Origin: Blepharisma stoltei ATCC 30299
Taxonomy: Eukaryota; Protista; Ciliophora
Assembly: GCA_965603825.1 (NCBI GenBank)
Contig: CBFDEM010000047.1
Coordinates: 62,001 to 126,000 of the forward strand
Reading direction: 5' to 3'
Length of the DNA: 64,000 bases
Below the pieces are notes generated by a model. That model saw only the letters and a program-made list of their open reading frames with translations, did not search any database and was not told where the DNA came from. The translations under genes were made by a program, and so were the position numbers. Shown here one piece after another: positions 38,419 through 44,377 of this stretch. Each line of letters starts with the position of its first letter. The first letter of the stretch is position 1.

Positions 38419-39141
38419 TTAATTATTAGAAATAATTTTTTCAATTATCTCGACGATTTCATCAAAAACTCCAATAAAAAATTGATCGCTATTCAGTGTA
38501 TAAATCCCTTTGCATTTTTCTTTTAATTCCTTTAAGTACTCCTGTGCATCAGAAGGAGAACAGAACGTATCAGCATCTCCGTGAATAATGTAAATGTCTC
38601 CTTTAACTCTTTCACAGTAATATTTCATATCGAGGTTCCTAAATTCATCCATTTCTTCTCTCGAGCATATTCACTCTCTCCCTAAACCACGATGAATCGC
38701 TTTACTGTTTTCCATCAATAATTCATTAACATCCTGCAAAAATACTGGAAGATCCATCATATTGTATCGTGGCGATATTGAAATAATTGTTTTTACATCT
38801 CCATATAAAGCCGAGTAAATAATCGAACTAATAGCTGGCTTGTACTGCCCAATAATTCCTTCAACTTTATAATCTCTGGAAGTTAGAAATTTAACAGCGT
38901 CATCTATATCTGCTGAATCCCTTATAAATCCAGCATATGAATGCTCTCCTTGGCTATTTCCGCTCCCAGTAATATCTATTTTGAAAGTATTTGCATCAAG
39001 ATGCTCAAAAATAAATTCAGATAAGAAAAAAAGCTCGGAAGGCCACATTGGGCAGATGAGATAGATTTTTTTGACTTCTGGGTATTTTATTGACATATAG
39101 TAAGCCAGTTGCAGTCCATGCCGATTTGTAAAATATTCCAT
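38419..39141 (-). CDS. Alpha/beta hydrolase copy 10 (Ser to Tyr and His to Gln; probable pseudo-enzyme)
   Basis: Joined via TGA38671 (GRE-W-ICS, cf. GREWKF); elbow GQYKPA; SDQF in place of CDH. Confidence 0.85.
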
Positions 39142-39647
39142 GAAACTATTATATTTAGTTTTATGATGGCTAATAATTGATTTTACTTTATTATAAAACA
39201 ATAGCTTTGAGATAATTATGATTTGGAAACTTTTTATAATTTAAATAATCAAGAGAAATATTAACCATATTTTTTATCATTAAATTGTAAAACTCTTTTT
39301 ATATGAATTTGGTATAGGAACAATTAAGATAAAAATCTATATTAGATTTTATATATTTGCATCGCCCTTTAAATCTTTAGTATTTAAGTCTCTAAGTGGT
39401 TTTTATAATTTTATATGCTATAATTTTTCTTAAATTATATCCTGATATCTTAATAGATTTATCAATAAATGAACATTCAGGCTCTAATAAACATAATTAT
39501 TAATTTAATAGATTAATCAACCCTAAATCAACTTGAAAATAGATTTATATAAACTTCTTTTAATTTTATATCAAAAGGTATAAAAATATGAAATTAGAAT
39601 AAAAAATTATAGAAGAATATATATTAAATTAACAAAAAAAAATTTTT

Positions 39648-40424
39648 CTAGCTCAATAAATTAAAGAGATTAATTTTTGAAAAATTTAAATAATAAATGT
39701 TTTTAATTTTCAGATATAATTTTTCAATTATCTCCATCACCTCATCGAAAACACCCATAAAAAAATGGTCACAGTTTAGAGCATAACATCCTTTGCATTT
39801 TTCTTTTAATTCTCTTGCATAATCACTCGCATCTGAAACGGGAATGTACTCATCAAGCTCTCCATAAATTATATAAATATCCCCTTTAGCTCTTTCACAA
39901 TAATCTTTCATATTTGTGTTTATTAGCTCATCCATCATTTCTTTATTAAATTTCCATTCTCTTCCAAAAGCCATAAAAACAACCTCATTACCATTGCGAA
40001 TTGACTCAAAATTCCTTTGTATAAATTCTGGAAAATCAATCAAATGATATTTTGGAGCCACTGCTATAATTGTTTTGACCTCACCATATAAGGCTGCATA
40101 GTGAATAGCGCTAGTTCCATATCTCGAGCATCCAATAATTCCTAATACTGTATATCCTCTTAAGACCAAAAATTTAACTGCATCATCTATATCATCTGCA
40201 TCTCTCCCATACCCAGCAAGGCCGTGCTCTCCTTGACTTTGTCCGTTCCCTGTTAAATCAAGCATAAAAACATTTGCATTTATGTGTTCGCGTATAAAAT
40301 CAGGTAGTAAAAATACTTCTGAAGGCTTCATAGAAGGGACAATATAAATGTTTTTGTCATCTGGATATTTTACAGATATTTTGAAAGCCAATCGTAAGCC
40401 AGAGCGATTTATAAAATACTCCAT
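39648..40424 (-). CDS. Alpha/beta hydrolase copy 11
   Basis: Elbow GCSRYG, CDH. Tail lengthened by an apparent 1-nt loss in the T-run 39720-39724 (one more base gives EKIISEN*). Confidence 0.82.
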   Translation of the reverse strand: MEYFINRSGLRLAFKISVKYPDDKNIYIVPSMKPSEVFLLPDFIREHINANVFMLDLTGNGQSQGEHGLAGYGRDADDIDDAVKFLVLRGYTVLGIIGCSRYGTSAIHYAALYGEVKTIIAVAPKYHLIDFPEFIQRNFESIRNGNEVVFMAFGREWKFNKEMMDELINTNMKDYCERAKGDIYIIYGELDEYIPVSDASDYARELKEKCKGCYALNCDHFFMGVFDEVMEIIEKLYLKIKNIYYLNFSKINLFNLLS

Positions 40425-41221
40425 AATGCAAGCAATTAGATTTAATATAGTTATAGATTATATTTATTTATTTGATTTAAGAAAAAAGAAGTTCTGTTTA
40501 TTTTCACGTCTATTAAGAAGAATAAATTATTTATCGCCATATTAAATAATAAAAGGAAATTCTCCTAAAAGAATTATGTTAAATATTTAGATCATCCTGA
40601 ACAGTTAGTTGCATGATTAATTAAAATAGTAATAAATTTAAAATATTTTATCAAGTAGGAAAATAATTAATCTGAATATTTTGATTGGTTTGTGTTTTAT
40701 GTAATAATTAAAGGTTTAGCATGCAAAGTACATAAAAAGGTTTTAGGATAATTGAAGATCTAATATTACAATTTGCTTGAGAATAAATGCTTGCATTTGA
40801 GAAATAAAAGGGCAATTGATAATTGTAAAAGATTGAAAATAAAAAATGATTAAAATTATATTGCAATCAATGATGGAAGTGCAAATATTCAATAAAAATT
40901 TAATATCATGATAAAATCTAACGTTTTTAAAATTTTTTTCCATAAGCAAGTCAGAAATTTTATCGTGCTTAATTAAACTATGCTTATTATCAAAGCAATT
41001 GTGATGACAGCCATGTTTATTATTAATTTTAGGAATTTCAGACTCTTTAAAGCAAATATATTATATAATAAAGGCGTTGATTTTAATCAAGGTGTTAGAT
41101 ACATAAAAGATAATGAAAACTCAATTAATATAATTCAAATTTTTGACATCGTCGCACTTTCAAGGATATTAGCAAATATTATAGTAAAAATGAATTAATG
41201 TAGTAAGAAGTTCTCATAAAA

Positions 41222-41944
41222 TTAATTGCCAGAAATTATTTTTTGGATTATCTCGACAACTTCATCAAAAACTCCCACAAAATAATGATCGCAATTTAAG
41301 GTAAAATGGCCTTTACATTTTTCTTTCACCTCGTTTACAAATTCTAGCGAATCTGAATAAGGACATATCTCATCAGAATCTCCGTGGATAATGTAAATAT
41401 CTCCTTTAGCTCTTTCGCAGTAATATTTCATATCAATACTTCTCATTTCTTGGACCATTTCCATTGTGATTTTCCATGTTCTTCCATAAGCTTCGTGGAT
41501 AATTCATCCAGACTCTTTGATTACATGCATCCTATCTTCCAAAAATTTGGGAAAAACATGCATATGAAATCTAGGAGCGATCGCTATAATATTTTTGACT
41601 TCACCATACAAAGCTGAGTAAAGAAATAAGCCAGTTGTATACTTTGAATAAGCTATAATTCCAGAGACTTCATACCCTCTAGAATTCAAAAATTTTACAG
41701 CATCTTCTATATCATCTGCATCTCTTCTATAGCTGCCATGAGAATGCTCACCTTCGCTGTCTCCGTCCCCTGTAAAATCAAACTTAAAAGTGTTTGCTTC
41801 CAAAAACTCAAAAATAAACCCGCACAACCAAAAAAGCTGTGTGGGCCACATAAGACAAGTTATGTATATTTTTCTATCATTTGGGTTTTTTATTGAAAAG
41901 TTGTAAGCCAATCGCAGACCATTTCGGTTAGTAAAATAGTTCAT
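41222..41944 (-). CDS. Alpha/beta hydrolase copy 12
   Basis: Joined via TGA41504; elbow AYSKYT, HGDSD, CDH. Confidence 0.85.
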
Positions 41945-42239
41945 ATTAGAATTTTTTATTATGAATTAAAAAATTAATTTATGTATCAAAGAATTCCTGC
42001 ATTAATTTTTATTAAGTAAAATAAATGTTAAATGAAAAAATAAATAACTTGGAAATAGTTACCATTTTTTTATTTTGGAATTCACTTATTTGAGTATTAA
42101 CTATGCAGAATTAAAATAATTAACCAAGGTTTATGCAGACGCCAGAGATATTTATAATCAATAAAGCCAGTTTTATTTCCACAAAATTATTATTCAAAAA
42201 TAATGATTAAGTTTCATAAATAATTTTATTGATTATCTC

Positions 42240-43215
42240 GAGACATTTATATAATAATAATAATAATAATAATTTAACGGTTATCGCCCTCTAGAGGACC
42301 AATATTTTCCAAATTCTTCTTCTTTTTTCTTCCCCTTCAACTCCAATTATTTCCATCTAAAAAATTCTGTCCATACCTCACATTTTCGGCTTTTTTCTTC
42401 AAATTCAATTCTACTTCATTTAAGACTTGATATCTTCGTCCTAAACTCCTTTCATAATTTTCTACCCCAATATTATGTATATCCAAAATCTTGTTGCATT
42501 CATATCTCTTTTTTCTTCAATTTTTCTTTCTCCATGACTTGCATGCAAATTCCATTTTATTTCATCCCTTCCCTTTTCGCGGGCAAATTTTTTTGCTTGT
42601 AATCGACTCAACGCCTAAATTCCAACACTTAGCATTTTCTAGGGAATCACCTCCTTCAGAATCCTTACTCTCTGGTGTACCTTGGCCTTCAGCTTTATCT
42701 CCAGCATTCCCAACCTCAGTGTTGTCCTTGATTCCACTTTCATCACTTGAGGTTTGAACTATTTCCACAGGCCGAGTGCCTGTTGTTGCATAAAGCGGCG
42801 TAGTTGTCTCACTATCAAGCACTTCTTCAGTTTGGTTCCAAGCCCAGGATACAAATCTTCCTCATATTTCATCTTCATCTTCTTCATCATAATCATCATG
42901 GTCATCGTAGTTGCTTCAGTAATCCTCCTCAGATTCATAGTCAGAAAAGAACTCTTCTGGTGGCATCAAGTATTCTTCTGCATTGAGAGCAATATCTGTA
43001 CCATTTAGCCATTCTTCCTCGTTCTCTGACATGCCGCCAAACTCCATGACTTTCCAATGCTGCTTCATCATCCTTGATACCTGGCTAGAAGGCAGTAATT
43101 CCCTTCCCTTCATGTACAGCTTTAATTCTTCTTCTAAAATCAAGCGTCGCGCACTCATTGAACACTTTAAACATGCCATTTAAAACCTTAATTTAATAAT
43201 GAGACATTTATATAA
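42240..43215. mobile_element. Inner 946-bp element flanked by exact 15-bp direct repeat GAGACATTTATATAA, with (TAA)n tract at one end
   Basis: Repeat at 42240-42254 and 43201-43215; (TAA)7 at 42252-42272; interior visibly more GC-rich than the flanks. Confidence 0.8.
42274..43179 (-). CDS. Orphan 301-aa acidic/basic protein carried by the inner element
   Basis: ATG43179 to TAA42274, 302 codons, five TGA, no TAA/TAG; joins track ORFs 42916..43179 and 42562..42822 and fills the element. Confidence 0.75.
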
Positions 43216-43672
43216 AAATGGCTTGTTGAGCCAATTCTCTCTTAAATCCTGTTTATCTTAATTAATTATTGTGAGAGAGGCTATCCGGTGATACATCATA
43301 GGCTTTTCTCCACTCTTGCTTTGTTGGCTGCTTGCCATCTGCTATATCCTACTCTTTCCTCAGGAGGTAGGCTCGAATACTAATTCTGAACTTATTAGGA
43401 CGCTTTGCTGTGCGATGTATCAAGCATGGGCTGTCCTTCCAGAAATTTGAAAATAGAATTTCTGCAGCTGATATTCCACAAGGTTTGCCTAAACAAGTTG
43501 AGCAACAACGCAAAGATGATCGGTCAAAGTTCAATCTTGTGGCAGTTTTTTCCTCATAGAAAAATGCAGCCAGAGTTGGGAGGAAATACAGAGATGTCAG
43601 TGACTATTTTTCTAGCCGATCAGGCAGCATGAACACCCTGTGCTTCGATTTTCCATTTTTGTATAAGTAAAC

Positions 43673-44377
43673 TTAAAAGACTATCTCGATTACTTCATCG
43701 AAAACTCCAATAAAAAAATGATCGCAATTTAACGTAAAATGTCCTTTGCATTTTTCTTTCAGCTCACTAACATACTCTAAAGAATCTCAATAAGGATTTA
43801 TTTCGTCAGCATCCCCATGAAGGATATAAATATCTCCTTTTGCTCTTTTACAATAATATGGCATATCTGTGTTTATTAATTCTTGTATCATATCCCATGT
43901 GCATTTCCACCCCCTTCCAAAGGCAGAGTGAACAATTTCTTTATTTTGGTGAATTATTTCTAAGTCATCTTGTAAAAATTTCGGTAGAGGATTCATATGA
44001 AATCTTGGAGCTAAGGCGATAATTTTGTTAACTTGGCCATATAAAGCAGAGTAAACAATGACGTTGATAGCGTTTCTTGAGTGCCCAATAATTGCTTCTA
44101 CTTTATATCCTAGAGAAGATAAATATTTTATAGCGTCATCTATATCGCCGGCGTCTCTTTCAAAGCCAGCATAAGTATGCTCACCTTGGCTGTTCCCATT
44201 GCCTGTAAAATTAAATCCAAAAGTGTTGCAATTCAAGTTTTCGAATAAAAATTCACTGAGAATAAAAATTTCTGTTAATGATAATTGGCAAACTATAGAA
44301 ATTTTTTTATCGTCTTGATTTTTAATTGAAAAGCGGCAGGCTAGTTCTAGGCCATTTCGGTTTGTAAAGTAATCCAT
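43673..44377 (-). CDS. Alpha/beta hydrolase copy 13, C-terminus clipped by the insertion
   Basis: Reads through TGA43787 (PY-W-DSLEY) to CDHFFIGVFDEVIEIVF*; elbow GHSRNA; original tail displaced to 42207-42241. Confidence 0.85.

Follow-up and report, generated by a model that had tools for sequence, protein, structure and literature searches.

In the window, by which we mean the whole stretch of 64,000 nucleotides analyzed here, an alpha/beta-hydrolase gene is broken near its 3' end by an insert that is built of two layers. Each layer is bounded by its own pair of direct repeats, and the two sets of repeats overlap at one end of the insert. This arrangement raises the question of how many insertion events are recorded at this locus and by which mechanisms they came about. 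Our preferred reading, to which we assign a probability of about 0.6, is that the last codons of one member of a tandem hydrolase array were struck by two germline insertions, one after the other, and that the inner one of them proceeded by target-primed reverse transcription.

Genome assemblies and scope of the comparisons

The genome to which the window belongs comprises 41.46 Mb in 64 contigs with telomere repeats (CCCTAACA). The window itself consists of AT-rich DNA, and TGA is used as a sense codon within conserved genes. Database records assign its proteins to Blepharisma stoltei. When we compared the hydrolase locus with a second public assembly (GCA_914767885.1), we found extra stretches there that are absent from the window. 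Since two of these stretches carry the published BogoMITE terminal repeat, we identify GCA_914767885.1 as the hybrid MAC+IES assembly that Seah et al. (2023) published; the window accordingly represents somatic (MAC) DNA. The MAC+IES assembly, which was reached via its annotated proteins, was used as germline-like comparison sequence. Four read runs were compared as assembled contigs, a format in which rare empty-site molecules are not visible. Further copies were searched for at the DNA level in the MAC contigs of the same genome, and this search was non-exhaustive.

Truncation of the hydrolase gene

The insertion site is located in a minus-strand tandem array of alpha/beta-hydrolase paralogues. 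The truncated paralogue (43673–44377, minus strand) encodes 234 amino acids and ends with ...DEVIEIVF*. Its match to the Pfam family Hydrolase_4 is weak, and the catalytic-type motifs GHS, HGDAD, and CDH are still present. The codons I-E-I near its end correspond to the right copy (43682–43689) of an 8-bp duplication, TATCTCGA, the left copy of which is found at 42234–42241. These two copies match in 8 of 8 positions, the identity ends there on both sides and 1440 bp separate them. Two intact paralogues (38446, 41249) contain this octamer as well, at their homologous V-E-I codons, and an additional occurrence at 40120 represents another site.

Next to the left octamer, positions 42207–42233 (minus strand) read INKIIYET*, which corresponds to eight last codons and a stop. 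When 1448 bp were deleted in silico, the hydrolase ended with ...FDEVIEIINKIIYET / ...DEVIEIINKIIYET and its C-terminus became EIINKIIYET*. The two intact neighbors read IIEKIISNN* and IIQKIISGN* after the octamer. Moreover, the C-terminus ..EII[HNQ]KII.. or a close variant of it was found in eight paralogues from the genome, and the restored end fits this pattern. Judged by the sequence, 42207–42233 is the detached end of this very hydrolase and the octamer is duplicated hydrolase coding sequence. The first-pass annotation had described an 8-bp repeat around 1440 bp, the removal of which repairs the gene; its coordinates are exact, and the family motif at the restored end speaks for the repair.

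In its present form, the hydrolase has lost nine residues of the family-conserved C-terminal helix and has gained two from the insert. An apparent transcript contig (43241–44328) runs from the hydrolase across the junction into the outer piece. Thus, the truncated gene still appears to be transcribed, and the outer piece would form a long 3' region of its transcript.

The 15-bp duplication and the support for the junctions

Within the octamers, a 15-bp duplication, GAGACATTTATATAA, flanks the inner layer. Its upstream copy is located at 43201–43215 and its downstream copy at 42240–42254. The latter is made up of the final 13 bp of outer-layer sequence and 2 bp of the hydrolase octamer, and consequently the left octamer and the downstream 15-mer overlap by 2 bp. 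In the 41.5-Mb genome the 15-mer occurs three times, and two of these occurrences (42240, 43201) are those in the window, 961 bp apart.

Both right-hand junctions are spanned by contigs of run X5, which originates from another study, and a contig of run X1 crosses the left octamer. The independent MAC+IES assembly contains the same arrangement of the whole insertion. With these junctions recovered in two runs and a second assembly, the two-layer insertion that had been proposed from the window is real. Every coordinate also holds for the proposed 15-bp repeat around a 946-bp unit with a (TAA)7 tract and one ORF. The additional suggestion of a tandem integration of two layers with a common terminal sequence is unnecessary, since the 15-mer behaves as the target-site duplication (TSD) of a second insertion.

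The inner layer is a member of a retroposon family

The inner layer (42255–43200, minus strand, 946 bp) is a full-length ORF301 retroposon, which consists of a 21-nt leader, the ORF, and a trinucleotide-repeat tail. The (TAA)7 tract at 42252–42272 is part of this tail, which reads as (ATT)6-7 on the minus strand (42252–42273), begins directly behind the TAA stop and continues into the 15-bp duplication. The 946-bp unit belongs to a multi-copy family, and copies were detected in the MAC as well as in the MAC+IES assembly. Two additional copies are full-length. One of them (C60, 99% identity) is located about 20 bp from a telomere; the other one (MAC+IES contig 2, L067, 98.6%) lies within at least 4.4 kb that are absent from the MAC and is germline-limited. 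The C17 copy (99.8%) is 5'-truncated, starts at the equivalent of window position 43125 and carries one frameshift, and its 3' end is kept. The 3' end is also kept in the C4 copy (93%), which has in-frame stops and 94 nt of different sequence at its 5' end. The remaining copies are a decayed fragment on C33 (97%), a 5' piece of only 93 nt on C22 (about 95%) and an old relic on C35 (about 72% at the DNA level).

The flanking duplications differ at four loci. They comprise 15 bp in the window, 10 bp for the C60 copy (GGTATTATAA), 15–16 bp for the germline-limited copy (TAATTTGAGAAATATA) and 14–15 bp for the C4 copy ((T)ATGCCTTAGCTTTG); for C4, the uninterrupted target is preserved in an intact MFS sugar-transporter paralogue. 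No flanking duplication was found when the C17 and C33 copies were searched for one. The tail follows the TAA stop directly and varies in length, with (ATT)7, 5, 5, and 3 repeats and (TAA)7 in the germline-limited copy. In the window, C60, and germline-limited copies, the T(T)A at the start of the duplication keeps to the register of the tail, as would result from pairing of the RNA tail with the nicked end of the target. The 5' ends of the three full-length copies agree within about 10 nt (13–21 nt before the ATG), and there are a few unmatched bases at the junction. When we tested the inner unit for terminal inverted repeats and for long terminal repeats, neither was detected. Taken together, the long variable TSDs, the simple-repeat tail and the 5' truncation indicate that the inner unit was made by target-primed reverse transcription. 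The first-pass annotation had suggested this mechanism from a long TSD and a simple-repeat tail, and for the inner layer the four differing duplications and the variable tails support it.

We also looked for the 3'-end motif of the unit (GATAACCGNTAA followed by ATT) elsewhere in the genome, and its counts outside the ORF301 family equaled those of the control. A relic pair with this motif in a surface-protein array on C51 was dismissed as a segmental duplicate. In an Rfam search of 41900–43800, the sole match was sub-threshold and snoRNA-like.

The ORF301 protein

ORF301 (42274–43179, minus strand) encodes 301 amino acids with five in-frame TGA codons read as Trp and takes up 906 of the 946 bp. 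Its codon usage is host-like and resembles that of the hydrolases (+0.19 vs. about -0.2 to -0.4 in the other frames). The first half of the protein is strongly acidic and the second half is basic. We searched the protein in pieces and obtained no Pfam match. Similarly, an Atlas search yielded no relative, and there was no protein similarity to the LINE ORFs fetched from the genome. For the N-terminus, the only relatives among 1.8 billion representative proteins were two B. stoltei copies. Frameshifts and stops build up in the truncated copies, and judging from this pattern only the full-length copies look maintained.

A contig that covers nearly the whole ORF301 was found in a run with gene-sized contigs that vanish in intergenic DNA; this run was taken as RNA by guess. 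The contig has a 3-nt insertion, which is absent from the window copy.

A candidate LINE partner

The inner unit itself contains no reverse transcriptase. LINEs in the soma of B. stoltei have been published (non-LTR, RTE-like, APE+RT; Seah et al., 2023, PMC9942856), and we counted at least 35 RVT_1 matches in the genome. A LINE on C46 has an RT frame of 597 codons, which is followed by TAA and (ATT)6 and thus ends like ORF301. When the last 24 nt before the tail were compared between this LINE and ORF301, the anchored score was reached by 4 of 2000 shuffles, and a local alignment was not significant. The small 3' hairpins were no better than those of shuffled sequences. From the similar tails we conclude that ORF301 was likely copied in trans by LINEs of the same genome.

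The ORF301 family thus comprises undescribed, non-autonomous, protein-coding retroposons, and the window copy is a young one. The idea of an undescribed non-autonomous family of ORF-carrying elements, which had been put forward for the insert, is borne out for the inner layer, which is multi-copy and lacks an RT.

The outer layer and its germline form

The outer layer (43216–43681, minus strand assumed) comprises 466 bp. If positions 42242–42254 are included, which would have been contiguous with it before the second insertion, its length is 479 bp. Its G+C content is about 42%. Even at E = 10 no further copy was found in the MAC, the ends carry no terminal inverted repeats above chance and no host-like coding frame was detected. 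Every long frame of the somatic and of the germline form was compared with Pfam, and the frames were also searched in protein databases and in Atlas; none of these searches gave a match. Likewise, neither blastn nor tblastx matched the outer layer to any of the fetched LINE loci.

The MAC+IES assembly contains an extra 264 bp at 43457–43464, which are absent from the MAC and consist of 256 nt and an additional copy of the 8-bp repeat CAGAAATT. The somatic junction AATTTCTG at 43457–43464 therefore marks a non-TA, repeat-bounded IES site within the outer layer, and such IESs are a published class in B. stoltei. The X5 contigs break exactly at this junction, as expected if the IES+ and the IES- forms are both present. 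In its germline form the outer layer has 743 bp and contains an open frame of 172 codons, a length that was reached in 8 of 1000 shuffles. The codon usage of this frame is neutral, and the outer layer may be a decayed coding fragment.

Most likely, the outer layer is a retroposed fragment, which would have been inserted earlier and also by a reverse transcriptase-mediated process. Its insertion mode is a guess, since it has no recognizable tail, partner, or other copy.

In the diverged run X12, homologues of the outer piece and of ORF301 were present on short contigs at a depth of 2–5, compared with about 60–140 for ordinary loci. This low depth hints at germline-limited relatives in that run.

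Fate of the insert in germline and soma

The insert is present in the MAC+IES assembly, in the somatic assembly and in MAC-type runs, and its germline-limited part amounts to 264 bp only. The soma keeps the insert apart from these 264 bp, which belong to the outer layer, and its hydrolase therefore terminates after two codons of inserted sequence. The germline form of the locus additionally contains two BogoMITE IESs with the published C-rich terminal repeat, one of 192 nt at 44257 within the hydrolase coding sequence and one of 342 nt downstream of the locus. BogoMITE IESs are derived from cut-and-paste elements, flanked by TA/TAA and cleanly removed from the soma (PMC9942856); in contrast, the insertion studied here is not.

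Order of events and alternative explanations

According to our preferred reading, a 479-bp single-copy sequence (743 bp in the germline) would have entered the hydrolase in a first step, with an 8-bp target-site duplication. In a second step, the A/T-rich 3' end of this insert would have received the 946-bp ORF301 retroposon. There, the first nick would have been placed just before TTATA, and the nicked end would have paired with the (AUU)n tail of the element. The second nick would have followed 15 bp downstream and thus 2 bp into the hydrolase octamer. With a second nick at this position, the 15-bp duplication would straddle the outer junction without any further assumption. The duplications, the tails, the family of copies, the presence of the insert in germline and soma and the truncation of the gene can be read directly from the assemblies. 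The order of the two events is deduced, since neither an empty-site allele nor an outer-only allele was seen among the contigs. Unless tails are preferred targets in this genome, it is by coincidence that the second element hit the first insert right at its end.

The main rival reading is that both layers arrived together. In such a scenario, an ORF301 source copy with its own 15-bp duplication would reside at another (germline) locus, and a read-through RNA from there would have been reverse-transcribed into the hydrolase with a single 8-bp duplication. The RNA would start about 470 nt upstream (about 730 nt in the germline) and end slightly past the tail, and the 2-bp overlap would represent priming microhomology. 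A single mechanism would suffice here, and it would account both for the lack of transposon features in the outer piece and for its occurrence as a single copy in the MAC. The C4 copy provides a kind of precedent, since its one duplication pair also encloses 94 nt of 5' sequence that is unique and in frame, and germline-limited copies of the ORF301 element do exist. However, the RNA must have ended within 2 nt of the end of the source duplication, and the scenario predicts a second outer piece, of which there is none in the MAC. Moreover, an X5 contig (43457–44500) shows no branch where the outer layer meets the hydrolase, although 220 bp away the forms with and without the IES are told apart in X5. 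A second germline copy of the outer layer is disfavored by this, and we consider a single event unlikely, albeit worth keeping in mind. Template switching as the source of both layers was rejected, since it leaves the internal copy of the 15-mer unexplained.

As a further possibility, the outer layer would be a DNA transposon of the hAT, P or Merlin type, non-autonomous and moved by cut-and-paste, which was later struck by the retroposon. The exact 8-bp duplication would be accounted for in this way, and a 14-nt inverted repeat (I11, 93%) is located near both ends. However, this repeat is not at the ends, the termini themselves are not inverted repeats and I11 is one among 33 comparable pairs in 1.7 kb. 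There is no other MAC copy and no transposase or Pfam match in the somatic or germline form, and 8-bp duplications are possible for LINEs, too. A hAT/Merlin-type origin of the outer layer, as considered in the first-pass annotation, is thus quite improbable. Even less credence can be given to the possibility that an IES, normally excised and shown by the assembly in its retained form, makes up all 1440 bp or else the inner 961 bp. It is true that the octamer begins with TA, that the insert does contain an IES of 264 bp and that partial excision of retroelement sequence has been published for B. stoltei (PMC9942856). But the window is a MAC assembly in which the insert is still present, and the MAC+IES assembly marks just the 264-bp stretch as germline-limited. 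No contig joint that skips 1448 or 961 bp was found in the four runs, and the apparent RNA contig reads across the junction between hydrolase and outer piece. The notion of a gene-bearing IES, the excision of which would repair the hydrolase, had to be abandoned for these reasons.

Relation to known elements

Processed retrogenes, and also LINE derivatives that contain only ORF1 (mammalian HAL1, for instance), are protein-coding, intronless, flanked by TSDs and made by the LINE machinery. ORF301 differs from them, since it has no poly(A) tail and its ORF is not recognizably a LINE ORF1. We rejected the classification of ORF301 as a processed retrogene because of its trinucleotide tail, because the full-length copies are all TSD-flanked and because no intron-bearing or other parent was found in the MAC. 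Nested insertions are well known for L1 and Alu elements, for which a second target-primed insertion into the A-rich tail of an older one leads to a duplication that spans the old junction. The nesting in the window resembles this situation, but an A/T-rich stretch takes the place of the poly(A).

With SINEs and other LINE-dependent retroposons ORF301 has in common the presumed mobilization in trans, a partner-like tail, variable duplications, and 5' truncation. A 3' end in common with the partner LINE is a SINE-type feature, which for ORF301 is weakly supported. However, SINEs are non-coding, usually shorter than 500 bp and have Pol III heads, whereas ORF301 is mRNA-like, with a codon-optimized ORF that nearly fills the element. 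ORF301 was therefore not classified as a SINE, since the ORF is host-like in 906 of 946 bp and there was no Rfam match to a Pol III-type head (tRNA, 7SL, 5S). LINE-dependent retroposons are a known kind of element; the ORF301 family is new and unusual in coding for protein. The LINEs of B. stoltei (PMC9942856) are found in the same genome, their insertions are kept in the soma, some of them are partly excised and the C46 tail is alike. Unlike these LINEs, ORF301 has no APE or RT and comprises only 946 bp with an orphan ORF of 301 amino acids.

Implications of the locus

The published account of LINEs in the Blepharisma soma makes no mention of a SINE or a non-autonomous retroposon (PMC9942856), and the locus adds a non-autonomous, protein-coding retroposon family that looks active. 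Somatic, subtelomeric, and germline-limited DNA all contain copies of this family, and genes are broken by at least two of these copies (hydrolase, MFS transporter). All this is ordinary transposon biology at an unusually clean resolution and overturns nothing known.

The duplications of both layers are still perfect, and the germline-like and the somatic form of the insert differ by a single internal deletion of 264 bp. The locus can thus be regarded as a dated natural test of genome editing on a fresh retroelement insertion, most of which was kept and a small part of which was eliminated. Such partial elimination bears on models of IES origin. As an unlikely extension of these findings, one may speculate that ORF301 represents a ciliate-specific class of protein-coding LINE parasites. 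Its bipolar protein would act on its own RNA like a LINE ORF1 protein, its 5' module would be a captured part of a host gene (C22 locus) and young insertions would be caught in conversion to IESs. If this were the case, the non-TA IES of 264 bp within an insertion with still-perfect duplications would be an IES at birth.

Modular structure of the ORF301 element

ORF301, the 946-bp retroposon forming the inner layer of the insert, has further copies in the MAC genome of B. stoltei (G000). At a locus on contig C22 (L006, G000:C22:196565-196657), the match was confined to the first ~93 nt of the element. This piece corresponds to window 43093-43185 and includes the ATG plus 29 codons; sequencing depth at the locus was that of normal somatic DNA, the diverged run X12 included. 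The C4 subfamily (L004/L069) carries an unrelated, in-frame 5′ module of 94 nt, the junction of which (~43098 in the window) lies at nearly the same point as the boundary of the C22 piece. The ORF301 mRNA looks modular in build, with its 5′ end perhaps captured from a host locus. In the own-genome DNA search, match edges varied slightly with the query, as seen for the C22 fragment, and thus the blank result for the 479-bp outer piece of the insert is no proof of its uniqueness.

When we compared the tails on the gene strand, four ORF301 copies ended in (ATT)n, whereas the germline-limited copy carried (TAA)7 (L067:3930-3960 vs. window 42252-42273). Since the tail unit varies among copies of one family, these data suggest that each insertion generates the tail anew instead of copying it faithfully.

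Genomic surroundings of the insertions

The insert itself lies in an array of at least five alpha/beta-hydrolase paralogues arranged in tandem on the minus strand (window 38419-44377), the proteins of which are ~50-56% identical. In several of them, the nucleophile-elbow motif contains non-canonical residues, and the paralogue at 39648-40424 has a longer and unrelated C-terminal extension. In the germline-like assembly, two IESs of the published BogoMITE class flank the insert: one of 192 nt within the hydrolase-2 coding sequence (L068:6122-6313; window 44257) and one of 342 nt downstream of the orphaned gene tail (L068:8823-9164; window 42013-42015). The soma is cleanly devoid of both but retains the retroposon insert between them.

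On contig C4, the ORF301 copy splits an MFS sugar-transporter gene (L069:3596-5818; G000:C4:~163400-164420) into pieces of 121 and 288 aa, which appear in the annotation as distinct proteins, including a chimera (P0002). An intact paralogue (88-89% identical) is located ~2 kb downstream. On contig C51 (L065/L066, G000:C51:100000-119999), genes for large cysteine-rich repeat proteins form a tandem array with decayed RT fragments between them, and a duplicated relic in this array resembles the ORF301/LINE 3′ end (hairpin, GATAACCGATAA, ATTATT).

The full-length C60 copy (L002/L026, G000:C60:649811-650759) has its own 10-bp duplication, and its end lies ~20 bp away from that contig's telomere repeats. 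Similarly, an RT-bearing LINE on contig C11 (L025) directly abuts telomere repeats, and the ends of retroelements and of chromosomes coincide in more than one case.
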